Shown here: positions 1 to 18,500 of the stretch, one piece after another
Position numbering within the stretch: position 1 is the stretch's first letter
Layout of the letters: each line of letters starts with the position of its first letter
Source: Adineta vaga
Taxonomy: Eukaryota > Animalia > Rotifera
Direction of reading: 5' to 3'
DNA: 64,000 nucleotides
Assembly (NCBI GenBank): GCA_021613535.1
Contig: CP075495.1
Location: 10,850,001 to 10,914,000 of the forward strand
The notes under the pieces: generated by a model
Database searches by the model: none
What the model was told of the DNA's origin: nothing
What the model saw: the letters and a program-made list of their open reading frames with translations, nothing else
Translations under genes and position numbers: made by a program

Positions 1-1981
1 CGACTTCCTTCTTCAAGTACTAATTAAAGGAAAGAAGAATTGCCTATATGTGTATATGACTCAGGCGGAGAATCCTTCAAGATGGAATGCCGGTTGACGG
101 AAACAACGCCTAGAGAATAAATAATTGAAGATGTTGCTAACAACCATCATCGCTATCATTGCGGTTGTTTGCTTCAATGCTTATCAACAAATGAATAAAA
201 CGTATATTTAGAAGAGTAGTTCTATTCTTTTTCAATAAATATAATTGAACAACTACTTTCTATTTCAATACCAATGAAGAAACAAGACGTTTTAAATTTC
301 TACTCTCATTCTCTCGTGTTTTTTTCACTATACTTATTTAATTTCAACACAATCAAATCACTGTTGCATATTTCTAAAACAAAGATATGTATTTAATTTC
401 ACTTACGAGACAATCTCATTTCATTTTTGTTTTGTTAAATATTCGTCTCATATTACATTAATCATTTGTCAAAGAATGATGAAATAATCAAGAAGATTGA
501 TTTAATATTCTCAACTAGATTTCGTGATAGATATAATTTGAATTAATTTATTCCAAGGAAATGTTCTTTTATTAATCAGATTAAGTCTTTTCTAACGTAA
601 AATATTTTCCTGTTATTAAACGGAAGTTTATAAAGAAAAGTCCTTCTCTGATTATTCCAAGCAAATAAGGAAGTTATTCATCAAGAAAATAAAGTACTTC
701 AGATGTCACTCATCGTTCGTTTTTTGTTCTATTGATGAAATTATGACAAAAAATGTATGTTGAAGTATATTATGATTAACTTGTTCAGTTTAAAATAGGA
801 GACAAAAGTAATTCAGAATGTGTCACTCGTTTAATTAAATAGTTTAACATAAAAATGGTGAGAATATGCTAAGAAAATTCTTGAATAGAATATTTGATTT
901 ATTATTATGGTAGATAGCGATTGATTATATTAGGTTTTAATATAACTTCCTCGAGGAAACTATCACATGAAAAACATAAATTGCATTGAAATCTCTTCAT
1001 CTATATCGACAAGACGGATCTGAATGATTTTGTACTTGAAAATTGTTTACATTAGATTCATCGATAGCTATTCTATATAACATTGAACTTATCTGATGTC
1101 TGGTTATAGATTTTCATGGTTTATCATAAGTAAAATCAATTTTATAATTATACTACTTTAAACTTCCATACTGTATTATCGATGTAAACTATTGAAATAT
1201 GTCAATAACTTCAGAAAGTTCTAAATAAGATGTAACACTTAACTTAGTTTCGAAATATTAGTCGTGTCAAATACACTAACAATGTTCTTAACCGTTTATT
1301 ATGGTTTTAACTTTGACAAGCAATTAAATCATTGTGTTTACATATTGTAACTTTGCTTCTGAAATCATATTACTGATTACAATGATGTATGCAATTCTAT
1401 TCAAATAGAATAGATGTTTATTTAACCTAGTAAATATACAATACCTTTGATATTTCATTGAAAATGCTTTACATCTATAATAATAAATTACTTATTCTTG
1501 ACAACGGTTGAAAAGATAAAAAAAAACAACAGTAATAATATTGGTTTCATTTTTCCATAGAAAATTGGTTGATAACAACAACATATGTATACAGTTGCAT
1601 TGAATGGTCGAAAGATATTTGAATATTTAGTTTGTAATTGTTGAATTGAAAAAATTTATTTTATATTCGTAGATTGAAATGAGACATCTGACAGTAAAGA
1701 AAACCAACAAAGTTGTTGATCATCATATGTTAACATTTTATCAAAAGTCTTATATATCGAAATGATAGTTTCTTCAAATCATCTTCATATGATGTATTAT
1801 TAGCTTAGAATAAATGAATGATATGTAGATTCTCTAAAATTAGTATTCATGAAAAATTGAGATTTTCGTTGACTGCGAAATTTATTGAAAAGTGTTACAC
1901 AAGAAAAAGTTTTTTTTCATAAATGAACGAAACATTTTTTTTTTGAAAAAATACTGTCATTTGGAAAACGATTGTCTTTAT

Positions 1982-2277
1982 TTATTTACCACATTTACAT
2001 GAACCAGCTGGACATTGGCAGTTATCACATGCACAACCTTCTTTGCCACATCCTTTGCCTATAATGACAGAAAAAAAATATTTAATTCCGTAGGAAGAAA
2101 TTACATGGATACACTTACTAGTTTTATTGCAATCACAGCTTGAATCACATGTACATTTGCCTGTTTTCGTGCAATCTTCTTTGCATCCGCATTTTCCATC
2201 TGAGATAAGAAAAAGAAAAGAAATAACTCGAGATATCAGAAAGTATTTGCTCACTTACTTTCACAACGGCAAGGCAT
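1982..2277 (-). CDS. Metallothionein type A, copy 1 (58 aa, 16 Cys)
   Basis: Exons 2277-2259, 2199-2119 and 2058-1982 with GT-AG introns give MPCRCENGKCGCKEDCTKTGKCTCDSSCDCNKTSKGCGKEGCACDNCQCPAGSCKCGK. CxC motifs, no aromatic residues. TATA-like CTATAAATAC upstream (~2353-2362). Confidence 0.92.
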
Positions 2278-2381
2278 TATAATTGGTATTAGTTGATATA
2301 AAGGTTTGATGAGATGAGAAAATTTATGTGATCTATTCCCAAATACAATGCAGTATTTATAGGGCTAGTCGTGGTGATTAT

Positions 2382-2467
2382 TTACGTAAAAGAAAAGGGG
2401 GTGCCGATAGTTACGTGAAAAAGAGAAAGGGGGTGTGGATGTATTAACCAAATAGAGAAGGGGGTGC
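2382..2467. promoter_or_regulatory. MT-A1 promoter module: three GGGGGTG(C/T) sites, two preceded by TTACGT(A/G)A
   Basis: GGGGGTGC at 2397, GGGGGTGT at 2429, GGGGGTGC at 2460; TTACGTAA at 2382 and TTACGTGA at 2411. Lies just upstream of the TATA-like box. Confidence 0.6.
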
Positions 2468-2917
2468 GGCTAGAGAAAGAGGAGTGTAACAGGGGAGTAC
2501 AATCCAGGTGTACCAAACAACGTTTATCATGTTATGTGAATGGCTATGTTTTTCTTTGAAAACCAAATGAAACCAATTGAAAATCAACGAACATTCGTTA
2601 GTAAAACAAGCATATCCAATTTATTGCTTTTCATTTTCTCTATTAACACATATGTTTGTGTACATATGAAGTTCACAAACAGAAAATAACTCATTTAAAA
2701 GATTATCTTTATACTATTTGCCAATCATACCAGACAGATTTGTTTTCTCTCACAAAAATTATTTGATGGTTTTCAATAAAATAAATCATTTTCTCATCAT
2801 CTAAACATACTTTTCTAGTAAACGAGTAGAACGTCTAACTCTATTTATTGAACGAAATCTTAGAACGATACAAACAGTGAAAAAAAGAATGACAGTTTGA
2901 CATGGTGCATATTGATT

Positions 2918-3223
2918 TCAAACAGCACATTTGCAAGCTGAGCAGTTGCAATCTGTGCAAGAACATGCCGATCCACAACTTGTATTTTCATCTATGAAGA
3001 GAAAAGAGAACGAAATGAAAAGAGAGAATAATGTGGATATTGAAGTACATACGAGAACATGATTTGCAGTCACATTTGCATGAACAGGTATCATCGCATT
3101 TGCAAGAACCATTTAGGCATCCAGCACCACATCCACATCCGGCAGCTAGAAATCAAAACTTAGAAATGTGAAGACAAGGAAAGAATGAATGAGTTTACTT
3201 TTGCATTGGCATGGTTTTGGCAT
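2918..3223 (-). CDS. Metallothionein type B, copy 1 (63 aa, 19 Cys)
   Basis: Three exons with phase-1 introns give MPKPCQCKTAGCGCGAGCLNGSCKCDDTCSCKCDCKSCSHENTSCGSACSCTDCNCSACKCAV. Confidence 0.92.
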
Positions 3224-3340
3224 ATTGATCGTTTGTTTTGTTTGTTAGTGATGAGACAAGAAACAATTGAGCGAATAAATGAATGAAAGAAGAAGTATAT
3301 CTGTGTATATATATATATATAGATGTCTGTGACTGTGTAT

Positions 3341-3931
3341 AACGTAACGGGGGTGCATTGGAACGATGAACAGCACCCCTGTTCAAGATAGATATATTAT
3401 GTACTTATCTGCATTCATCAGTTGAGCACCCCCTTTTTTCCTCATGTTGAATTCACATGATGCGTTTCATCGATGATGATGATGATGCTGCTATATTGAT
3501 CTTTAACGAGATACGAGAGCAAGACTTAAGAAAAGGATGACATGTACCTAACTGGTCTGATTGCGATAAGTGATGGCAGAAAGAAACACAAAAACGTTTA
3601 AGTGAAATCATATATCATAGCGGTAATAGAACGAATAATACGAATCAACATGTATTCTACCTGGAATCATCAATACAACTACAGTGGCGAAAAATATTGA
3701 ATTCTTTGGAATATCTGAACGCATAAGACTTTCATATTTTCTAATATAAATTCATTTTAATTCATACATTATTGTGGACTTCCGACTTTATTCAAAATTT
3801 CACGTGTAATATAACCCACAGAACGGATAAATCAAAGAAAACGGGGGTGCGCAGTTAATCATTAGCGATAAATATAATATATCTATCTTGAACAGGGGTG
3901 CTATTCATCGTTCCAATGCACCCCCGTTACG
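3341..3931. promoter_or_regulatory. Shared divergent promoter of the MT-B pair, with six GCACCCC/GGGGTGC sites
   Basis: Sites at 3349, 3373, 3426, 3843, 3895 and 3918. TGCACCC and TGCGCAC match the MRE core TGCRCNC. ACGTAA/TTACGT lies next to the proximal site in each arm. Confidence 0.65.
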
Positions 3932-4042
3932 TTATACACAGTCGCAGACATCTATATATATACAGATATGCTTCTTCTTGCATTCATTTATTCGCTCAAT
4001 TGTTTCTTGTCTCATCACTAACAAACAAAACAAACGATCAAT

Positions 4043-4349
4043 ATGCCAAAACCATGCCAATGCAAAAGTAAACTCATTCATTCTTTCCTTGTCTTCACAT
4101 TTCTAAGTTTTGATTTCTAGCTGCCGGATGTGGATGTGGTGCTGGATGCCTAAATGGTTCTTGCAAATGCGATGATACCTGTTCATGCAAATGTGACTGC
4201 AAATCATGTTCTCGTATGTACTTCAATATCCACATTATTCTCTCTTTTCATTTCGTTCTCTTTTCTCTTCAATAGATGAAAATACAAGTTGTGGATCGGC
4301 ATGTTCTTGCACAGATTGCAACTGCTCAGCTTGCAAATGTGCTGTTTGA
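4043..4349 (+). CDS. Metallothionein type B, copy 2 (protein identical to copy 1)
   Basis: Mirror image of 2918-3223. ATG at 4043, TGA at 4347-4349, GT-AG introns. Confidence 0.92.
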
Positions 4350-4615
4350 AATCAATATGCACCATGTCAAACTGTCATTCTTTTTTTCACTGTTTGTATT
4401 GTTCTAAGATTTCGTTCAATAAATAGAGTTAGACGTTCTACTCGTTTACTAGAAAAGTATGTTTAGATGATGTGGAAGTGAAAATAAACGATGTTTTAAT
4501 CGAAACGTAAAATTTATTGATTACATTTTTCAAGTATTGGTTGTATTCAATACAAATAAAAAGAAATATTAGAAGAGTTTAAGTGAAATGTTCTTTGGTT
4601 AGCTTATATTCATGT

Positions 4616-4913
4616 TCATTTGCCACATTTACATGAACCAGAAGCACATTGACAGTTTTCACATTTACAGTCTGCATTGCCACATCCTTTACCTAGAAAG
4701 ATACAAATCAATATTCGAGAATTAAAGAGAAAATTCAATTGCTAAACTTACTGGTATTATTACACATACAACTTGAGTCACATGTACATTTGCCTGATTT
4801 AGTGCAATCTTCTTTGCATGAACATTTTCCAGCTAAAAATATAAGAATATTTATGTATTTACGTTTGATGGCCTCTGGTTTTTGAATTTCATACCTTCGC
4901 ATTGACACGGCAT
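4616..4913 (-). CDS. Metallothionein type A, copy 2 (58 aa, 16 Cys); absent from the ORF track
   Basis: Exons 4913-4895, 4832-4752 and 4692-4616 have the same 19/81/77-nt sizes as MT-A1. Product MPCQCEAGKCSCKEDCTKSGKCTCDSSCVCNNTSKGCGNADCKCENCQCASGSCKCGK is 45/58 identical to MT-A1 with all Cys conserved. Confidence 0.92.
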
Positions 4914-5512
4914 TGTATTTAATATAAGATAGAGTAATATTTCAATAATCGAGAAAAATAATAATGAAATATTTGTGTCAATGCATCTGTATTTATAGTA
5001 CTACCGAGAGAAAAAAAAAAGCGGCGCCATTCGTTCCATAGAAATAGTGCGAGTTCATATTTATGCATGAATCATCTTCCTTTCTATTGGCTTGTTCTCG
5101 TCAAAAAAGCAATTCTGCGTAGTACTAAAGAAATAGAACAATATTTCGTAGTTCTAATCACCTAGAACTTACTAGAATAATTCACTTTTTATTCATTTAT
5201 TTGCTCTATTTCCGAGATGAATTCGGTTCCCGATGGATAGAATATACATTTATTATCTTATTTCTTTTTATCCTAGCATCATTCAGCACGGTAATACACA
5301 TTGACTAATAATAACACATCAATCATATCAAAATCTAGAATTTGAAAACAACAAATAACCCTTGAACTTATCCATGCACCATCATTTAATAGTAACAAAA
5401 AAACAAAACATTCAAAAATGTTAGATTCATATATACATGAATAAACACATAGAAAAAAGACGATCGTTGAAAAAAATATCGTTTATGAAACGAAAGTAAT
5501 AATATTAGAGTA

Positions 5513-6647: not shown

Positions 6648-6910
6648 TAAACATCATGAAGATTCGAGTAAAAACGAATCAATGAAATGACATGCTCGTC
6701 TTTTACTGGTTGAAATATCAATCTATGATCATTTTTTTGAAAGAAAAAATTCGATACAAATTACCAGTTAACTGTGAAAACTTATTAAGATTTATGATGA
6801 AAAAATAAAATTTCTAATGCGAAAAATGATGTCGCCACTATCGATATTACTGGGAATAATCCTCATGATTCAATTCAATCTAAATTAATATTTTGCGATT
6901 TGATTTTTTC

Positions 6911-7319
6911 ATGTCTGAAAAAACTCAAATTCCACGTGTTCTTTGAGCTCAATAATGTGCAACTGTACTTTTGACGATTGTTATGCTGAATATTGACAAA
7001 GTTGATGTTAAATTTGAAGAAAATGCTGTCAGTTTTCATGACCAATCATCAACTATGTTGTTAAAATTGATTTATATGAAAAGATCGATCCCGATTCATG
7101 TAAATATGACCGTAATAAATTGAGAAAGAAAGATGAAAAATGAAAAGTCGATAGGAATTATCAAGATATATTTTCTGGAGGTAAGATAAAATGAAAAAAT
7201 TAGTTGTAAACAATTATAATTCGAATTCTATTGTAGGTATGGAGCTAATGAATGATATATCAGATAAGACTGGTATTTCTGATGACGATGAGATAAAATC
7301 AATGTCTACTAGAAAATGA
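6911..7319 (+). pseudogene. Decayed p23/Sba1 (PTGES3-like Hsp90 co-chaperone) pseudogene
   Basis: Reads MSEKTQIPRVL*AQ*CATVLLTI (cf. the Sba1/p23 P-x-V-x-WAQR motif), then a frameshift, then YVVKIDLYEKIDPDSCKY..LRKKDEK*KVD and an acidic tail. Stops at 6944, 6953 and 7141. Retains a GT-AG intron at 7181-7236. Confidence 0.75.
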
Positions 7320-7756
7320 GAGCAAAACTACAAACTCCAGTGTATAAGGATCAATCACTAAGAAATAATCTAAATAAGTTAATCTTTAATTGATTTTTTT
7401 TTCCATAAAATGTTTATTATTATTATCTCTGAACTGACTGAATTCAAGATATATTCATATGGGAAGGCGATTTATTAGTAGCTCGTTAAAATCTTGTGAA
7501 AATATCGGCCATTTTAATTTAAGAAAAAAAATCTTGATTTCATATATCCAATTCTTTCTAGATCGGTCTCGCTTTTTCAGTCAACCAAAACAAGTTAATG
7601 AATATTGAAAATATTTCTTGAACCTTCAAACGATGTAACTACTAAATGGTGACAGAATCGAAAGAATGAATCAGAATATAAACAAAAAACTCGATTGAAT
7701 TAAATCTATTATGATACAAAAAGGTAATTTTATTTTCAAACAACTTAATCTTAATA

Positions 7757-8134
7757 ATGTCTTCGAACAATTCGTCATTTGTCCTTGAAAGTCCACCTAA
7801 TATACACAAGATTGCAGACTTAACTACAAACACATCTCCTACTATTGATATAACCTCACCTTCAAGCGATGATTTCTCATCAGTTATTAATGAATTTACA
7901 ACCGAACGAGTTTGTCGTTTATTAAGCAAGAATCCAGAAAATTATAATGTGATTAGAAATACAAAGAATAATTTAACGTCTATATGTTGGAATCTCTTTG
8001 GTATTCCGGCTAGAAAAATTCCTGGAACAGAAGAATTTGTTCTTAATACGATATATGTAATCTGTATGCAAAGTCATAGGATGGGATGGGACGAAAAACT
8101 TTTTTGATCCCATCCTATCCCACGTCGAACCCTA
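7757..8134 (+). mobile_element. Internally deleted hAT-like DNA transposon remnant
   Basis: The ORF ends in S-I-C-W-N-L-F-G-I-P, resembling the first half of a BED finger, and breaks off before the CxxC. It is followed by GGATGGGATGGGAC...CCCATCCTATCCCAC...CCCTA, a TAGGG-type terminus. No left TIR was found. Confidence 0.55.
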
Positions 8135-8748
8135 ATACATTCCTTATATCTCATGGACGTGTATCGAAATACATTCGATTGCAGTCTTCAAGTACTTGCA
8201 GCAGCTGATGTGCTCAATGGCAGAAAAGTCATTTGTTAAAAAACAATTGATCCTGAGTTGCAATAACTTGACCCAAAAATTAATTTTTAAAACATCTATT
8301 CTCATTCTATACTCTTTTGAATTAACAATATGGTTTTACTCTCAATGTATATTTTTATGTTTAGATAGAAATTATTTTTCGATTTCAACAGACTATGCAT
8401 CGTACAAAATGATTGTAGATACAAGAAAGGTTTTTTTTACAGTAGTATAGTATACAGATACATTGTAATTATGCTCTTTTGCTAGAAAATTTTCAGAAAA
8501 TTAACTATTTCATGAGAATGAGTAAAAGTCTATTTATAGTTTTTCTATGAGTAATACATGACGCCATTTTTGCGATAAAAAGACAGAGAGCATTTGACTG
8601 AGTCAATATAAAAAGAAATAAAAAATAGAGTAAATGAGAAAATGTGCTTTAATCTCACCTGGTAATATAACGCAGATATACGCATAGTCATTACAAAACC
8701 CATATTGTTTATTCTGATTTCTTTGTCTTAGATAAATAATAAAAGAAT

Positions 8749-10344
8749 ATGACTGAAAATTCTCCTCTATTAGGAGGTCCAGCACCTTTATATCCTACCA
8801 TAACACCTTCTAACGATCCAAATTCGTCACCACCACCACCATATTCATCAGAATCGGCACAAGCAACCTCACCAAAACAGAATGCACTTCCACCTGCTAA
8901 TCAATTTCCACAGATTGATATAAATTTTGGTTGGGCTGTATGGCAAGATCGTGGTTTTGCTATTGCATTTTGGATTCATTTTCTTGTCGTAACTATACTT
9001 GCATTTTCCTTGGGTATACCAGCTCTTCGTGCAGATGCGAAAAGACCATTTGATGATCCAAGTCGAACAACATTCGATTATAATGCAGATTTATTTATTC
9101 GTGTTTTTGTTGGAGGTGCAGCTTTAAGTGGTCTAGTAGCATTTGTATCATTTTTTGTTCTCCAACGATGTGCTGGTCGAATTATTAAATGTTCACTTTA
9201 TATGGGTGTAGCAATACAAATTCTATTTTGTGTAATTTTATTTATTGTTGCTTGGCCTATGGGTATTATAACACTTATAATTGTTCTTATTTCGCTTTGG
9301 TATATCTATATTGTTCGAAATCGTATTGCTTTTGCTGAAGCTCATATACAAGTGGGTTGTGCTGCTTTACGTAGTCATCCATCTGTTTTAGGTGTTGCTA
9401 TAATTATGTTAATTGTACAATTTTTATGGGTATTTCTTTGGGGTTTAATGGCTTTAGGTTTTGAATATGTTATGAATGGAGAAAATAAGTCAAATTCGAA
9501 TGGAGCTGTTGGTGGCATATTTGTTATTGTTTTGTTAACATCATTATTTTGGGGAGCATTAACATTTCGAAATATAACACATTTTGTTACAGCATGTGTT
9601 GTTGGCCAATGGTGGTTTACAGCTGATGCACATCGACAATATGCTGTTGAAACAAGTGTTCAACGTGCATTTACCACGAATTTCGGTACAATTTCATTTG
9701 GTTCATTAATCTTAGCTTTTATTAAAGCATTACGTGTTGTTGCACAAGTCAATGAAAGTAATGCTCGTCGAGATGGAAATATTGTTGTTTTACTTCTTAG
9801 TTGTGTTGCTGTATGTATCCTTCGAGTCTTTGAAGGACTTGTACGATATCTTAATGAATGGGCATTTGTTTACGCTGCTTTAACTGGGCAATCATTTCGT
9901 GCTGCGAGTCAAAGTTTTCTTAATCTATTTCAACAACGCGGTTGGACCATGATTATCAATGATGATCTTGCTGGACATGCTCTAACAATTGTTACTGTTG
10001 CTATTGGATTAATCTCTGCATCACTTGGTGGTATCGGTGTTTATGCTGCTATGCCAAATTCACCTTCACGTGCTTCCATTGCAGGCATGGCAGCATTTTT
10101 CTGTTTTATTATTGGTACTACAATGGGCACAGTCATGTCATCTATTCTTAGTTCAGGTGTTCGAACAGCATTTGTCTGTTTTGCAATGAATCCTGCTGCA
10201 CTAGGTACCACACATCCTGAACATTTACAAAATTTACTTCTTGCTTGGTATAAATTTCATCCACAAGAATTTGCTCAGAGTGGTTTCGCAATGCATTTAC
10301 CTAAACCTGCCGCTTCGTCTAGTGATATTTATCGAAATGTATAA
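8749..10344 (+). CDS. Choline transporter-like (CTL/SLC44, PNS1-type) membrane protein, single coding exon
   Basis: 531 aa with ~10 hydrophobic segments. Family motifs RNRIAFA, AFTTNFGTISFGSLI, YLNEWAFVYAALTGQSF..AS and IINDDL. Confidence 0.88.
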   Translation: MTENSPLLGGPAPLYPTITPSNDPNSSPPPPYSSESAQATSPKQNALPPANQFPQIDINFGWAVWQDRGFAIAFWIHFLVVTILAFSLGIPALRADAKRPFDDPSRTTFDYNADLFIRVFVGGAALSGLVAFVSFFVLQRCAGRIIKCSLYMGVAIQILFCVILFIVAWPMGIITLIIVLISLWYIYIVRNRIAFAEAHIQVGCAALRSHPSVLGVAIIMLIVQFLWVFLWGLMALGFEYVMNGENKSNSNGAVGGIFVIVLLTSLFWGALTFRNITHFVTACVVGQWWFTADAHRQYAVETSVQRAFTTNFGTISFGSLILAFIKALRVVAQVNESNARRDGNIVVLLLSCVAVCILRVFEGLVRYLNEWAFVYAALTGQSFRAASQSFLNLFQQRGWTMIINDDLAGHALTIVTVAIGLISASLGGIGVYAAMPNSPSRASIAGMAAFFCFIIGTTMGTVMSSILSSGVRTAFVCFAMNPAALGTTHPEHLQNLLLAWYKFHPQEFAQSGFAMHLPKPAASSSDIYRNV

Positions 10345-11860
10345 AGATTACAAAGTTGCTACTTTTTTTGTATTATTAATTTCATCGTAATCCTGAATTT
10401 TTGGAATAAATCAAAATCATTTTTCTATTTTAGTAATATATTTCTTGTTTTTTTTCTCGTTTCAACAGACATATGTCATATCTTGTTTGTCTTATTATTC
10501 GGAAAAAAAACTTGATACAAACATAGACAGAGAGAAAGAGGCGAAAGGAACGATACACACAATAGGAAAAAACGAAAGGAAAGAATATACTTGACACCGT
10601 GAAATACAAAAGACGAGAAAAAAAAGAAAGAATCAATGTATGAATCAGAATAATACCGATGTTGGAGTTGGAAAATAGACAAATTAGTCAATAGGAAAAG
10701 ACATAGACATACACAGATATAAAGAAATTTATGTTCAAAAGTCGAAATAAAAACGTACTCGTTCATACATGAATTTGTTAAACGAGTAAACTACAGAAGA
10801 TGATACTGTTCTTAGAAGAAGATATACAAGATGCACACACATACATAAATTTTGGATAGATATAATTCGACTTCACACGTTGTATGTTAAGGGTAAGAAC
10901 ATGAATAGATCTAAACACTGCTCGATAGGTTGACTAAAAGAAGACAAATAAACATACAGACAAATATTTTGTACAAAAAAAAGAAAACAAAGGTTGATAC
11001 GGATATGATCATCATCATAATTCAAATCGGACTGTTTGCTATGAATAACAAAAGATTACGAAGCAAGAAAAACAAACGCGATAGAGTCGATTTCTTTTTG
11101 AAAAGAAATAAAGTTTGACAATAAAATCCCTGAGGAATCAAAACAAACAAACAGTTTTTGAGGTAATTAGGAGAGAAGAAAATGCGCATGAAAACATCGA
11201 AGAATTTATAGAGAAAAAGAAATTAAAAGATGAAATAAAATAATAACAAAACAAAGAAAAAAGAAGAAGAAAAAAACTGAACAATCATGGCAAGTCAAAT
11301 CGTTCATTCGAAATGATGCAATTTGTTTTTCTGTACGAAACACTTTTCTTTTTATTTTTCGTTCAATTTCTCAAAGTAAAACAAAAAAAAATAAAGAATA
11401 TGATACCTGAAAGTTCCATTTAGGTATATAATTGATTTGTTTATTATCACTAATATGAAGGGATCGTTTTGTTTTTCTTCTTATTTGAACACAAAAGAAA
11501 GAAGGAGAGATTCAATAGACAAAAGAAAGTAGATGAGGTCTCTGCGAGGATAATCCTGTATGTACATAAAAATAGGAGTGTATAGGAAAAACTGCTAAGC
11601 AGATGAATCTTATATTTTCATTTTAGATAGTTGTTGATTTGGTTTTCAGTCTTCTATAAAGACATTCTGAGCAAATGTATAACACAACGATGATAATTCG
11701 TTTGTTTCGTGCTTTTTTTGACGTTTAAAACACCAGAAAGAGAAATAAAAAGAAATGTAGTTGCACTGTGAGCAGTAGATAAGAAAAGAAATTCCTGAAG
11801 AAAGTATGAGCGGTAAGACAGGAAAATATGACCTGTTCTTTGAAATGAAGATCATGATCA

Positions 11861-14800
11861 TTAAAATGAACAACCAGAAGAAATAAGAGTAGCAGGTGTA
11901 CTTGATGGTCGACTCATTGAATTTGGACTTGAATGATGATTAACATCAGTTTCATCAGGAGATGATGATGTTGATGTCGGTGGTGATAAAGATGATATAT
12001 CATTAGGATTAAGTGTTACAGTACCTGGATTATGACTATTAGAACGAACACCATTTCGATGACATGGTGTAGCAATTGATGATTGATGTTCATCTTCATC
12101 ATCTTCAATTGGACCACCTTCTTCATCACTTGTATAATCCATAGATTCTACTAATGTTTTATTATTTCCTCCATGTTGTTGCTGCTGTTGTTGTTGTTCT
12201 TTTTGATGATGTTGTAAAATTCTTCGAAGTATTGTTCGTGCATTTAGTAAGCTTTTTGTATCTGCAGAGGAATTTGTAGTTGATAATGGATGTTTGCTTG
12301 TTAAAAAATTTGTTAATTGATTATTCAATGAACTATGTGATTGAGTTTGTTGATGTTGTTGAAAAGCAATTGCTTTAAGCACAGCTAATGGTACACCCAT
12401 TGTTCGAAGTTCTTCATAACTTTTTTCATTCAATCCAATAAATTGTTCTTGTTGTTTAAATTTATTTTTTATTTCTTCATGATCATCATCTTCGTCTAAA
12501 TTAATACGTTCACCATTTGGTGGTAATTCAATTAATGTTCGCTCATCATCATCTTCATCTTCATCTTCACTATGCACCTCAGAAACAACAAGTGGCATGG
12601 AAACATCCATAGACATCTGATGTTCATTTTCATCCTCATCACCTTCATCATTTTTCGATTTAGTAGGAACATCTGGATTATTATTATTCACATCTTTTAA
12701 ACGTTCTTCATCTAACATTTGATAGAATTTCGAACGTTTTTTCGGTGGCATCTTACGTATACGTTCCATAAGATCATCAACATAACCACCAACTGAACTT
12801 AATGATAATTGTTGACGATCATCAATTTCAATATCATGATCATTTGCATTAATTTTATGTAAACGTTTTGCTGAAAATTTTGTACTATTTGCATTATAAC
12901 ACGATGATGTAGACATTTCCGATGTTATCGATGAACCTGATCCTGTTCGAATCGATGATGGTATCGATGGTGATAGACGATTATGTGGCAAACCTGATTC
13001 ATAACCACTTGATGCATTTGATGTTGACTAGAAATGAAAAGTTCAAGTTTCGATTAAAATAAATTTCACATAGAAACAAAGAAGCTTCTTATTCATACCG
13101 AATCTTTTCTTGGTGGAGCATATTCATCACTTTCATCATCACTTGGTCCACCATGACTTGTTGTTGACGAAAAACCACTTGAACGTCTTCGATAATTATG
13201 ATATGCAGCTGTAACCATATCAATTTGTTGTTGTGCAGTTAATGTTGTTGAATTATTTGGATTAATTCTTTGCCTTATCATACATGTAGGCGGTAGTGAA
13301 CCGGTTGCAGTATTCGGATATGAAGCACGCATCAATTTATAACGTGGATCATTTCTGTAACTATGTGGTTCATCATGAGAATTAGTTCCTGATGTTATTG
13401 TAGCTGGTATTGATGATGAAGGTAAAGATGATGTTGATGATAAGAGTTTTAATGTTTCAGGATTAAGATATGTTGGTATTTTATTATGATTTCCATTCGG
13501 TGATGAATTGGAACGATTGATATAATTTTGAAGTTCATTCATAGCATTGACTCCTGGTTGTGGTGGTGGTAGCGGTGGAGGAGGAGGAGGTGGTGGTGGC
13601 GGTGGCGGGGGTTGTTGTTGATGATGATACTGTTGTTGAGCATGAGCAGCAGCTTGTACAGCAGCATGCCATAGTTTCGTTTGAGCTAATAGTTTATTTT
13701 GAGCAGCTACAGCAGCTGCTGAAGAATAGGCTGGTGGTGAACTAACACGACGTTGTAATGATGGTGATAAAGAATTGATATCAGCATTAACACGTGTAGA
13801 TGATGAAGATGAAGGATGTGGTATATAAGGTAAACGTTGTTGTTGCTGTTGTTGATTAATCATCATTTTATTTGCAACAGATGAATGTGGATGGCGACCA
13901 TTATATTGTGATTGTTGTTGTTGTTGTCGATATGAAGATAAAAGCCATTCAGCATGCTGCTGCTGCTGTTGTTGTTGTTGCTGTTGCTGCTGCTGTTGCT
14001 GTTGTTTATATCTATCTGCACCTAATGCAACTTTTTTTGGAATCGGAAGTCCTGTATCATGAGCAAATGCTGATGAAGATTGTGTTGGTCGATGTGAAAT
14101 TGGTGATGATTGTGAAGGTGTTGCGGTCGTCGATGATAATGTTTGTTGTTTATGTTTGTTTATCATTGCTGCTGCTTGAGAATTTAAAAATGCACGATAA
14201 GCTGCTGGATCTGTAACACCAGCTGACATCATAGCAGCAGCGACAGATAATTGATTAAGTGTAGACGAATTATTTCCTTGGTTATGTTCATTGAGACGAG
14301 CTGATTTTGGTAAAGATGTTGCTATTATTGATGACTGTCGATGGTAATTGTTTGACATACTAACAAGTGGTTGTGATGATGTTGATGTCGGAGAATTTCG
14401 CTCTTGAGATAAAGATAATGTCGATGGTGATGATGTTGAATTAACATTTGAAACAGCCGCAACGGCTGCTGCAGCTTGAGATGCAAGTGCTGCGGCCGCT
14501 GCTGCTCGTTTGCGTTTGAGACTATATTTCTTATAGGGTGAATTATTTTTAAATGATGGATTTATTGTCCATACATATTTAACAGGACCTTTCGATATTG
14601 ATGATATAATAGGTACTCGAATAAATTGATTGTGTAATGATAAATTATGTCGAATAGAATTCTATTTTGCAAATAAGGAAGAAAAACAAAACAAATTAAT
14701 TTAAAAATATAATCTTATAGATTAACTCCTGACTTAATTAAGTTAATACTATGGAATATCACGGAAAAAATCTTCATAAAGTATTATCCAGGGGCATGCA

Positions 14801-15572
14801 TTTTTTTTATAACTGAAAAACTATATAATTAGTCGTTCGAATGAGTTCTTTTCCTCGAGAAAAATCTTCATCAATTTTTGTTTGTTTACGTTTTTCTTTC
14901 GCAGAAAATATGATATCATCAATTATTTACCTTCCAACCCCAACTTGTTTTTGCATCAATTTTATCTTTGAAATACGGTACAAATTTTATAATCCATTCA
15001 TAAACTTCATTTAATGTTAATCGCTTCCATGGACTACTATCGATAGCACGTGTAATCAATTGAGCATAAGATAGATTACCCCATGGATTACGATAGGTTT
15101 TATTGATACCAATACCTAATTCTTGTATAACAGATTTCGCTAGACGTTTATCATATTCAACAAGTATATCACGTTTTTCTTTTCGATGGCGTGGCCATGT
15201 ATTGAAACGTAAACGATCACGGTGAACATTATTAGTACCAGTTGAATCAAGAAATGAACTACTATGTGATAAACGACGATGAGTTTTACGAAGTGATGTG
15301 TTTGTTGCTGTTATTGTTGACGACGACGATGATGATGATGAAGATGATGTTGTTGGTTGTGGTCCTTGAAGATGATTATTCAATGAAATTGATGATGTTG
15401 GTGAAGGCGAGGGTGAACGAGTTCGATGATACATTGTATCTGATGGCGATTCAACAATTAATGAGGAATAATCGTCAGTTCTTGACGGAATAAAATGATG
15501 AGGAGAGACATCATCTTCGTTGTCATCATCAACAACGAGTGAAATGTCAATTGGATGACGAGAACGATGCAT
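11861..15572 (-). CDS. FOXO: Forkhead box O transcription factor (~1123 aa)
   Basis: Exons 15572-14931, 14661-13099 and 13027-11861. Forkhead domain RNPWGNLSYAQLI..KRLTLNEVYEW..WGWK/NSIRHNLSLH; N-terminal Akt/14-3-3 site RLRFNTWP; polyQ, polyP and polyS tracts. Confidence 0.9.
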
Positions 15573-18500
15573 GGTCGGCACTGCTTACTATCTGACCATT
15601 TGGCCGTCAATGACTACTAACTTACAAAGCATCTGGAAAAAAAATCAAGAAGAAAGTCAACAAAGAAAGAAAGAATTCTTTTCTCATGAGAACCATCTGT
15701 TCAATATATATATATATATATTTGTATGACAATGCATTGGTAATATGTGTTGCTTGAAAAATAGAACTCAGTTCTTATTACGTAAGAACCATTTTTTTTT
15801 CAAAACGGAGAGTTCAACATCGGTGGGTATCTTAAAATGAATATAATATAAAAATGTCATTTTTAACTGTACTATTGGCACAGAAGAGAAAAAGAAGAAA
15901 CGAGGAAAAAAATGCTGACCCTTTTACCTTCTCTCGCTCTCTTACGCGGGCGCGCAGTTTTTTCTTTTTTTTTTCTTCTTTTATATCATATACATGGAAA
16001 CGATGAGAGAAGCAAAAACACTACTATATTGAGCATCGACCGATGATGCATTCCTCGAACCAGTGTGCTCATGCATACGTCACTAAAGATTCTTTTCTCG
16101 TATTTTTTTGCACGCGTCGTTCATACAATGCGGCCAAAACAAAGGAAAGCGCGACCTCCTTCTCGTACTCTCTTTCTCTTTCTCTCTGTCTATATATATG
16201 TATATATACGCAACAAAAGTCATCTCGATTTTTTTTACTAGAGCGATAAGCCTGACCGCAAAAGTTTATAACAAAGTATTACATGGCGTCAGAGCAACAA
16301 GAAAAGAGAAGGAATTGATTTTACCTATAACATAATAAACGTTGCAAAAATACCTCGATGAATGAATGCATGAGGAAAAAGAGAAGTACAAAAAAAAAGG
16401 TTAAAGATAAAGTAAAACGATGATAAATTCATGGAATGCACAACGTATGGGATACGTATGTGAACGAAATAGGAGACATCAGAAGTATCTACACATTCTT
16501 TGAGTTGTACGTTTGAAATGAATGAAAAAAATCCTATACAATACATTCTTTCTGTTATTCTAACATTCAAAGCACGTCTCTCTTTCTCCCTTCCCACCCT
16601 CTCTCTCTCTCTTTCTGTCTCTCTTCATCTCCCTCTTCATTCAGCAGCAGCAGCAGCAACAGCCTAGAGAAGAAATAAACAAATATAACTGCATTACGTA
16701 GACAAACGTACAATATCTGTTTTCGAGTCCATTTGCACATGAAATGATGAAAAAAACTAATAACAATTCAATGTTATATCTTTACGAGATCTAATACAAA
16801 ACAAAACGATTTTAAATCTCATTTTAACTTATCTCAAGGTCTTGTAATTACATACCTGTGCATATCTAATTAATGAAATAAAATTATGCAAACGAAAACG
16901 GAAAAATGCAATCTCGGACAGCACAACACCTTATCATTCATTGCATGATATTTGTTTATTTTGCTCGTATATGTACATATATGGATATGTATGTGATGCT
17001 TTGTCGAAAGGGCATAGTATGTGCGCAAGAGCGAAGAGAAACCATCACCATCATACATCCTATCCCAGTGGCCACAAGTACAAGGCTCTTTTTTTCTTTT
17101 TCTTTGCGCAATTTTGTCACATTATCGTTGTCGTTTCTCGACCAAACGCATGCACTCTTTTTCTCTTCCACACATATACATACATACATTCATACATCAG
17201 ATGCGTACAAGAAGGCTCTTTGAGCAGAACAGAAATCTTTTTCTTTTTTTCTCTTACACCGTATATATATATATATATATGTATATGTATACGTATTGAA
17301 GATGGAGAAAAAATAGCTGCTGGGCGCAAAAGGCGAACAAGGTTGTCAATATTACGTAACAACGACGTGTGGGCGCGTGTATATACGCAAGCGAGCGTTC
17401 TGTTTTTATTATTGACATAATATGTTGCGATGCGGGATGTATACACGTTCTTCTATTTTCTTGTTTCTATCGTAAAATACATACGCTGACTTTCTACTAT
17501 AACGTACTATCAACTACCAATTGAGAATAGAAATAACTAACTTATTAGGATATGAAAGAGAAAAGAAAAGGCGCATAAATGGAATTTTGATGACACGTCA
17601 TTAATGTATTCCTAAGTAATCAGTTGATCGTAAAAAGAAAAGAAAAAAAATTGTTTGTAATGAGTTAATTTCATTCATTTATTCATTTTTCTTTTTTAGA
17701 AAAAGGAATAACAATTATTATATGGCTATGAGAAAAAATTTATAAAGATTAAATTGTAGCTATTTTCAATTAATAACACCGATGAAAATATAGATAGATC
17801 AATATCGTACAGAGTAAAAAAAGACAGAGAAGTTCGTTATTTCGAATCATGAATACTTACCTATGAGTAGTAATAAATAATTGCTGAAAAAAGAAAATGA
17901 ATCAATGACAATAATTGCATATTAATAACTAATTTAATCGAAACAAAGAGAAAAACAACTTTTCATTTGGAGCGTAACTAAGTAAATAATATTAATAATG
18001 TGTCATGTTTTTCTTTATGTTGAATTCTAAACAGCGAAAGACAAAGAGAAAAAGAAAAGGAAGCGTTATTACAAAAGAATGTCACTGATGAAAATGTCAT
18101 GAAAAATCTCTTCGTAATTGAACATGTTTAAGTAAGCGTTGAGAAAAAAAGATTATTATTTTTCTGACAACAGTTGTCAGTGACAAAGAAAAGTAATTCA
18201 AGTGTACAAACTCTTACCTCTTGCGTTTTTTTCCTACTTATTATCATTACACAACAGGTGAACTATATGCAAGTAAAAGAAAAAAAAGCCCAGATCCAAG
18301 GTGAACAACAAAATCAAAAGAGAAAAAAATCTTTTCTATTCTCTACCCTCTCTTACTTGCCCTTTTTTTCCTCCATGTGTATGTGTATGTTTTACCAATA
18401 GATCAATCTTCAATTAGTATTACATCATCTCCAACGGCTTCGCAATTGAATTTAATATACATAAAATTAAATTCAAATAAAAAGAAAAAAAGTAAAAAAA

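Follow-up and report, generated by a model that had tools for sequence, protein, structure and literature searches.

The stretch of DNA studied here, referred to as the window, comprises 64 kb of contig 2 (CP075495.1, positions 10,850,001 to 10,914,000) in the assembly GCA_021613535.1 (100.8 Mb, six contigs) of the bdelloid rotifer Adineta vaga, and all coordinates are positions in this window unless a contig is named. Within 3 kb it harbors four intact three-exon genes in the order A1(-), B(-), B'(+) and A2(-), which encode small cysteine-rich peptides of two types, A and B, and which we consider to be probable metallothionein (MT) genes.

Gene structures and transcripts of the array

Gene models were reconstructed from the window sequence, and local scripts served for spliced translation, counting, alignment and the calculation of ratios of nonsynonymous to synonymous divergence (dN/dS). 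An earlier interpretation made from the DNA letters (the sequence-only reading) had described the same four-gene layout, peptides of 58 aa with 16 Cys and of 63 aa with 19 Cys that use CxC motifs without CC doublets, and two phase-1 introns behind a first exon of 19-25 nt, and all of these features reappeared in the rebuilt models and their translations. Each of the eight introns is of the GT..AG type, is 53-62 nt long and lies in phase 1, and the first exon contributes 19 coding nt in type A and 25 in type B. The exon pieces of A1 match those of paralogues on contig 5.

Cys makes up 16 of 58 residues (27.6%) in type A and 19 of 63 (30.2%) in type B, with seven and nine CxC motifs, respectively, and no CC doublet in either case, and intron 2 splits these Cys residues into 9+7 in type A and 12+7 in type B. 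As the sequence-only reading had also stated, both types are free of aromatic residues (Phe, Trp, Tyr); type B nevertheless has one His, of which type A has none. The N-termini read M-P-C or M-P-K-P-C and are polar without a hydrophobic run, indicating, by direct reading of the translations and not by a predictor, the absence of a signal peptide. With a mass below about 10 kDa, 28-30% Cys in CxC and CxxC motifs (the usual range for MTs being about 25-33%), no aromatics, little His and no signal, the peptides show the sequence features by which MTs are recognized operationally. In an exon-piece alignment obtained with MAFFT, exon-3 peptides aligned with exon-2 peptides through a common C-x-C ... 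C-x-C-x-x-C-x-C pattern, which suggests that the two halves of the peptide may have arisen by internal duplication. The use of this alignment as a family profile for the large search was dropped, as MAFFT had stacked exon-3 on exon-2 pieces.

Parts of the window occur in 20 public sequencing runs, and contigs of four runs from four studies were compared with positions 1900-5000. In these contigs all predicted intron ends of the eight introns were seen as exact joints, and the search for splice junctions that the sequence-only reading had proposed thus came out positive. Poly(A) or poly(T) loose ends occur 15-35 nt beyond the AATAAA signals, and the 5' adaptor of SMART cDNA directly abuts the 5' end of the B' transcript and, in run X8, that of A1. 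The transcription start sites (TSS) defined by these adaptors lie 26-32 nt downstream of TATA boxes. Exon contigs showed a k-mer depth of 10^3-10^4 versus 1.5-28 for the intergenic region 2420-2731 in the same runs, and such contrasts are valid within the same runs and not across runs. The type indicated for the runs (RNA) is only a tool's guess, and we take the runs to be cDNA-derived because of the spliced contigs, the poly(A) ends past AATAAA, the SMART adaptors and an exon depth far above the intergenic one.

Two contigs deserve separate mention. A 674-nt contig of run X1, in which both B introns are spliced, extends through the B promoter into unique sequence as far as 3669 (window 3199-3669), a position where contigs of two runs end, and differs from the window by four substitutions and a 6-nt deletion; it could reflect an upstream start, read-through or an artefact of the assembly graph. 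Run X10, which is labelled as a different organism, provided a spliced contig that is identical to the B coding sequence (CDS) and part of its 3' untranslated region (3'UTR; window 2883-3224) with unrelated flanks, and which could originate from a close relative, from cross-contamination or from a chimeric contig.

Paralogues, palindromes and upstream elements

Copies of the family were located by exon-by-exon searches of the genome and with a splice-model enumerator, revealing at least 13 intact genes, a number that is a lower bound. Types A and B form one family, in which each of the 16 Cys of type A has a Cys counterpart in the alignment with type B and both intron positions coincide, type B having an additional C-x-C-x-x-C at the end of exon 2. 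Pairwise dN/dS values among paralogues and genes of other species range from 0.12 to 0.41 at dS values of 0.5-2.2. Cys is conserved in every one of the 16 or 19 columns, in paralogues and other species alike, whereas of the 42 non-Cys positions only 20-36 are identical; purifying selection acts on Cys.

In the four type-B genes of contig 4, which form two head-to-head pairs 8 kb apart with CDSs 98-99.5% identical across the pairs, intron 2 has been lost precisely while intron 1 is kept and the frame is unchanged. This precise loss independently confirms the exon 2/3 junction, and one of these intron-2-less genes (L020:5994-6155, plus strand) could be used in searches as a naturally unjoined query. 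Collinearity with window 6900-17500 identifies the contig 5 cluster as the ohnologous locus. The type-A tandem must therefore be older than that duplication, and the pair B/B' has either been gained on contig 2 by insertion or disappeared from contig 5. The type-A relic on contig 5 keeps its upstream TATA box and a core of a metal-response element (MRE). In the diverged pair at 9.11 Mb of contig 2, Gly and Ser stand in place of two N-terminal Cys, a five-residue deletion has removed two more, and a Tyr and a Phe have been added; this pair could be a neofunctionalised or a decaying copy that conversion has kept uniform.

Relatives were found in metagenome contigs (L023-L025), in the assemblies GCA_905332015.1 and GCA_905332155.1 and in one Logan run, all of them AT-rich and with equally short introns. 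The sequence-only reading had called the cassette lineage-specific, and in the protein collections and assemblies searched relatives indeed occur only in bdelloid-like contigs; the array itself, however, is not unique but one locus among the 13 or more. In GCA_905332155.1 a type-B gene is followed 700 bp on by a type-A gene (L035:3996-4299), and the neighbourhood of both types is therefore older than A. vaga. An example of mis-annotation was noted on the same contig (L035:506-3324), where the two final exons of a type-B gene have been annotated, together with unrelated exons upstream, as the 140-aa protein P0005.

B and B' are arranged head-to-head in a palindrome and have CDSs that are 100% identical. 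The arms differ most in the length of their (TA)n TATA boxes, that of B exceeding that of B' by 8 nt (3304-3311 versus 3962-3963), and they also have different bases immediately ahead of the mapped TSS (3286 versus 3980). A 3'UTR base specific for each arm (2867 versus 4400) was covered on both arms with no listed difference, and both B and B' therefore appear to be expressed, contigs being weak evidence for expression at the level of arms. Each of the four type-B loci is palindromic, its arms aligning over 473-598 bp and its spacer measuring 373-473 bp. The arms of a pair are 97-99% identical, whereas type-B CDSs of different loci share only about 82% identity, which points to a probable homogenisation of the arms by gene conversion within pairs.

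Upstream of A1, B and B' we noticed the word GCACCCCC, which resembles the MRE core TGCRCNCS as cited for Daphnia and vertebrates (PMC2234263). Counting both strands, it occurs six times in the window, each occurrence belonging to the promoter of A1, B or B', against a chance expectation of about 0.08 copies estimated from base composition. Genome-wide there are 100 copies, 17 of which lie in promoters of the family, and a reversed control word occurs 61 times. A phased pair (20-26 nt apart) is found in the 100.8-Mb genome only upstream of A1 and of one type-A gene on contig 5, and the three-site layout of A1 recurs in an environmental orthologue (L023). The element is located 125-200 nt upstream of the ATG and the TATA box at -80 to -98, an arrangement common to the two subtypes, to four contigs and to other species. 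Within about 200 bp of the TSS, exact TGCRCNCS cores number one for B, two for B' and two for the environmental A1 orthologue.

Checks of the other GCACCCCC pairs of the genome did not reveal additional MT genes; two of these pairs are GC-rich repeats. A gene for a ZIP zinc transporter (Pfam Zip, E 1.5e-49) is followed, about 340 nt after its stop codon, by an inverted GCACCCCC pair with a (TA)n TATA box, which could represent a metal-responsive antisense promoter. At another locus two inverted exact MRE cores, both TGCACCCCC, directly precede a TATAAA and an arrestin-domain (ARRDC/TXNIP-like) gene whose product starts with M-G.

Features of the array and of related loci in the Adineta vaga genome (window positions unless a contig is named; L and G000:C numbers denote individual loci and genome contigs)
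Feature	Position	Strand	Details
Gene A1, type A, 58 aa/16 Cys	1982-2277	-	CDS exons 2259-2277, 2119-2199, 1982-2058
A1 introns, both phase 1	2200-2258 (59 nt); 2059-2118 (60 nt)	-	joints 2199>2259 and 2058/2059>2118/2119, runs X5/X8
A1 transcript 5' end	2329/2330	-	SMART-adaptor loose ends, run X8; 5'UTR ~52 nt
A1 TATA box TATAAATA	2355-2361	-	84 nt upstream of ATG
A1, three phased GCACCCCC-type elements	2397-2404, 2429-2436 (ACACCCCC variant), 2460-2467	-	~31 nt spacing
Palindrome, left arm (gene B and promoter)	2795-3400	.	593/598 identical to reverse complement of right arm
Gene B transcript, type B, 63 aa/19 Cys	2811-3286	-	CDS exons 3199-3223, 3053-3145, 2918-2991
Gene B splice joints	2991>3053, 3145>3199	-	runs X1, X5, X10
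Gene B 3' end	AATAAA (reverse complement) 2844-2849; poly(A) site ~2811	-	poly-T loose end at 2811
Gene B TSS	~3286	-	placed by mirror symmetry with B'
B promoter	3302-3433	-	(TA)n TATA box ~3302-3321; GCACCCC 3373-3379; GCACCCCC 3426-3433
B exact MRE core TGCACCCC	3349-3357	-	on gene strand
Unique spacer between arms, 473 bp	3401-3873	.	no internal symmetry
Palindrome, right arm (gene B' and promoter)	3874-4472	.	
B' promoter	3843-3964	+	GGGGTGC 3895-3901; (TA)n TATA box 3953-3964
B' GGGGGTGCGCA	3843-3853		exact MRE core on opposite strand
B' exact MRE core TGCACCCC	3917-3924	+	
Gene B' transcript	3981-4456	+	CDS exons 4043-4067, 4121-4213, 4276-4349; TSS 3981
Gene B' splice joints	4067>4121	+	second intron seen as joint between the two identical arms
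Gene B' 3' end	AATAAA 4418-4423; poly(A) sites 4440, 4456	+	poly(A) loose ends
Gene A2 transcript, type A, 58 aa/16 Cys	4494-4965	-	CDS exons 4895-4913, 4752-4832, 4616-4692
Gene A2 splice joints	4692>4752, 4832>4895	-	runs X1, X5, X8
Gene A2 3' end	AATAAA (reverse complement) 4513-4518; poly(A) site 4494-4500	-	poly-T loose ends 4494/4500
Gene A2 TSS, probable	~4965	-	contig of run X8 ends there
A2 TATA box TATAAATA	4991-4997	-	
Contig 5 copies			two intact type-A genes and one relic
Contig 5 type-A relic	L019:8760-8920; G000:C5 ~9432760-9432920	-	start codon changed to AGG, exon 2 truncated, no exon 3
Contig 3 copy			one type-A-like gene, 62 aa/17 Cys
Contig 4 copies	L020:4921-6158, L022:4232-5477; G000:C4 ~232.9-234.2 kb, 241.2-242.5 kb		four type-B genes, two head-to-head pairs
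Contig 2 copies at 9.11 Mb	L021:5860-7278; G000:C2:9109859-9111277		one diverged head-to-head pair, 58 aa/15 Cys, with Tyr and Phe; arms differ by 1 nt in CDS
ZIP-adjacent GCACCCCC pair	L029:3970-4075; G000:C3:2620069-2620175		ZIP gene L029:4292-5278(-); TATA points antisense into ZIP gene
Arrestin-gene MRE pair	L028:3990-4050; G000:C1:9474289-9474350		

Proposed assignment to metallothioneins and its alternatives

The four genes most likely belong to a new MT family of rotifers (bdelloids) with two subtypes, which is probably metal-inducible and which would be a new family of a known kind, placed by its sequences outside the known MT families. The sequence-only reading had already proposed MTs, and composition, size, the CxC pattern and the MRE-like promoters agree with this proposal, whereas the peptides match no known MT family.

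Several results weigh against the assignment. Pfam metallothioneins (PF00131, PF02067, PF02068, PF05522 and others) gave no match at E values up to 10 when queried with single exons, the in-frame read-through of A1 (window 1985-2197, minus strand), the intron-2-less type-B paralogue and the open reading frames (ORFs) P0001 and P0002, a set that did not include the joined proteins. PDB chains, solved MTs among them, gave no significant match either with a single sequence or with a profile, and in an exhaustive phmmer search of 1.84 billion representatives no non-rotifer protein matched; the queries in all protein searches were exons, read-through or the intron-2-less paralogue, not joined spliced proteins. 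As to the promoters, GCACCCCC is absent within 500 nt upstream of A2, the contig 3 gene has no GCACCCCC-type element upstream, and the three elements of A1 deviate from the canonical MRE core by missing its first T. Because no Pfam, PDB or non-rotifer match was obtained, the assignment to MTs is based on composition and context and not on homology.

The phmmer search returned five matches, all of which are mis-called or chimeric ORFs from bdelloid-like contigs. When 5.8 billion clusters were searched with a word-based method, type A led to three intron-read-through ORF calls from metagenome contigs, and type B had no match. In the matching ORF calls introns were read through, TGA was read as Trp or MT exons were fused to unrelated exons, and correctly spliced proteins are absent from both collections, in line with the expectation of the sequence-only reading that the genes were probably unannotated. 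Its claim of novelty, which it would have given up for a match to characterised MTs of the lineage, also stood, as the literature searched contained no characterised rotifer MT. A language-model feature search against named clusters placed MTs at ranks 2-4 (PF00131, 0.83; PF02068, 0.82; PF02067, 0.80) behind a cluster without family (0.83), and every score was below 0.9, the level required for more than a lead.

Tiny exons, and models that no ORF caller would report, might suggest chance combinations of ORFs and splice sites in AT-rich DNA, or transcribed non-coding RNAs. This explanation is already refuted by the observation of eight out of eight splice junctions, by the conservation of frames and of every Cys codon across paralogues (at the dS values given above) and species, and by the intron-2-less paralogues that keep the same frame. 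That the genes encode secreted disulfide-rich peptides of an antimicrobial, toxin-like or knottin-like kind is very unlikely. Although designed cystine-knot peptides were the PDB entries most similar to the type-B paralogue, their E values of about 0.1 are not significant, the peptides are polar throughout with no hydrophobic signal at the N-terminus, and a Cys content of about 30% far exceeds that of knottins.

More serious, but still improbable, is the idea that the products are Cys-rich proteins of the cytosol that serve mainly in redox reactions or as structural components, such as thiol sinks or KAP-like disulfide cross-linkers, rather than metal-thiolate proteins. It would be in agreement with the missing homology to any known MT family, and the high abundance would also suit a structural protein. 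However, a strict CxC/CxxC pattern without CC, the lack of aromatic and hydrophobic residues and a length of 58-63 aa are MT-like and not KAP-like, promoter elements of the MRE type are typical of MTs, and one of the few other element pairs in the genome adjoins the ZIP zinc transporter gene.

Each of the four genes is transcribed from a TATA promoter, with a start some 52-62 nt ahead of the ATG, and its transcript loses two phase-1 introns and receives a poly(A) tail. If the genes encode MTs, as we prefer to think, the products, which contain 28-30% Cys as CxC/CxxC and no aromatics, would be cytosolic. Apo-MTs are disordered. Since the rotifer peptides are Cys-rich, signal-less and aromatic-free, we propose that they adopt a fold only around thiolate clusters of Zn(II), Cd(II) or Cu(I), with a predicted load of roughly 5-7 divalent ions per chain, and that they would buffer metals and oxidants. 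The one to three GCACCCCC elements that precede the TSS of A1, B and B' by 60-140 nt, some of them exact MRE cores, most likely bind a putative MTF-1-like zinc-sensing factor, which would make these three genes metal-inducible. The only sign of divergence within the array, a hint, is this regulatory one, with the element in A1, B and B' and without it in A2; the latter may be constitutive, and types A and B may be specialised, for instance for Zn/Cd versus Cu.

Comparison with known metallothioneins and implications

The rotifer peptides resemble MTs of vertebrates, molluscs and crustaceans (PF00131 and relatives) in size (58-63 versus 58-62 aa), in a Cys content of 28-30%, in the absence of aromatics, in CxC/CxxC motifs and in an N-terminus M-(x)-P-x-C-x-C with intron 1 just past the first CxC. 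Nothing usable on intron phase in MT genes was found in the literature searched. The introns of mouse MT-I are at codon positions 9 1/3 and 31 1/3 and are thus both in phase 1. Unlike these similarities in plan, sequence homology between animal MTs and the rotifer peptides is not detectable, and CC doublets, present in the alpha domain of vertebrate MT, are missing from the rotifer peptides. Cys residues are split 9+11 in vertebrate MTs and 9+9 in crustacean MTs, from which the rotifer numbers of 16 and 19, with their distribution about intron 2, differ. A typical animal MT gene has three exons and two introns, a TATA box and MREs (PMC4101491), and the three-exon layout, TATA boxes and MREs of the rotifer genes agree with this description.

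Daphnia pulex Mtn1-3 are lineage-specific MTs that were missed by similarity searches and whose genes have three exons, short introns, exact TGCRCNCS cores less than 200 bp from the TSS, a TATA box and AATAAA (PMC2234263). In Mtn1 the first exon measures 86 bp, at least 64 nt of which are 5'UTR, which leaves about 22 coding nt, and the second exon measures 90 bp (PMC2234263); these sizes imply a short first coding exon and two phase-1 introns, as in the rotifer genes. In contrast to the rotifer genes, whose inducibility is a prediction, induction by Cd has been shown for the Daphnia genes; there is no sequence similarity between the two groups, and the Daphnia genes do not form palindromic pairs. 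The small MTs encoded by mtl-1 and mtl-2 of Caenorhabditis elegans also represent an invertebrate family restricted to one phylum, as the rotifer peptides probably do, but their promoters are without MREs (PMC4101491), whereas those of the rotifer genes do carry MRE-type elements.

A wider joint reading is tentative and, taken as a whole, doubtful. According to it, bdelloids would possess an MT family that has kept the ancestral plan of animal MT genes (short first exon, two phase-1 introns, MRE/TATA promoters) and in which type-B genes always occur as converted palindromic pairs; GCACCCCC might define a very small metal-responsive regulon that includes the ZIP-antisense pair; and the abundant products could form a major thiol buffer that aids tolerance of oxidative stress, desiccation and radiation.

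A survey published in 2025 listed zero Pfam metallothioneins for Adineta steineri, Rotaria socialis and Brachionus (PMC12274423, Table 4). The family described here comprises at least 13 intact genes and is transcribed, yet hidden Markov models and gene callers miss it, and this invisibility accounts for the zero result of that survey. The gene models, transcript ends and candidate response element are usable as metal biomarkers in rotifer ecotoxicology, and the probable MTs open work on how the bdelloid proteome is protected from oxidation. Finally, the common three-exon, phase-1 layout bears on the question of whether animal MT families have one origin.

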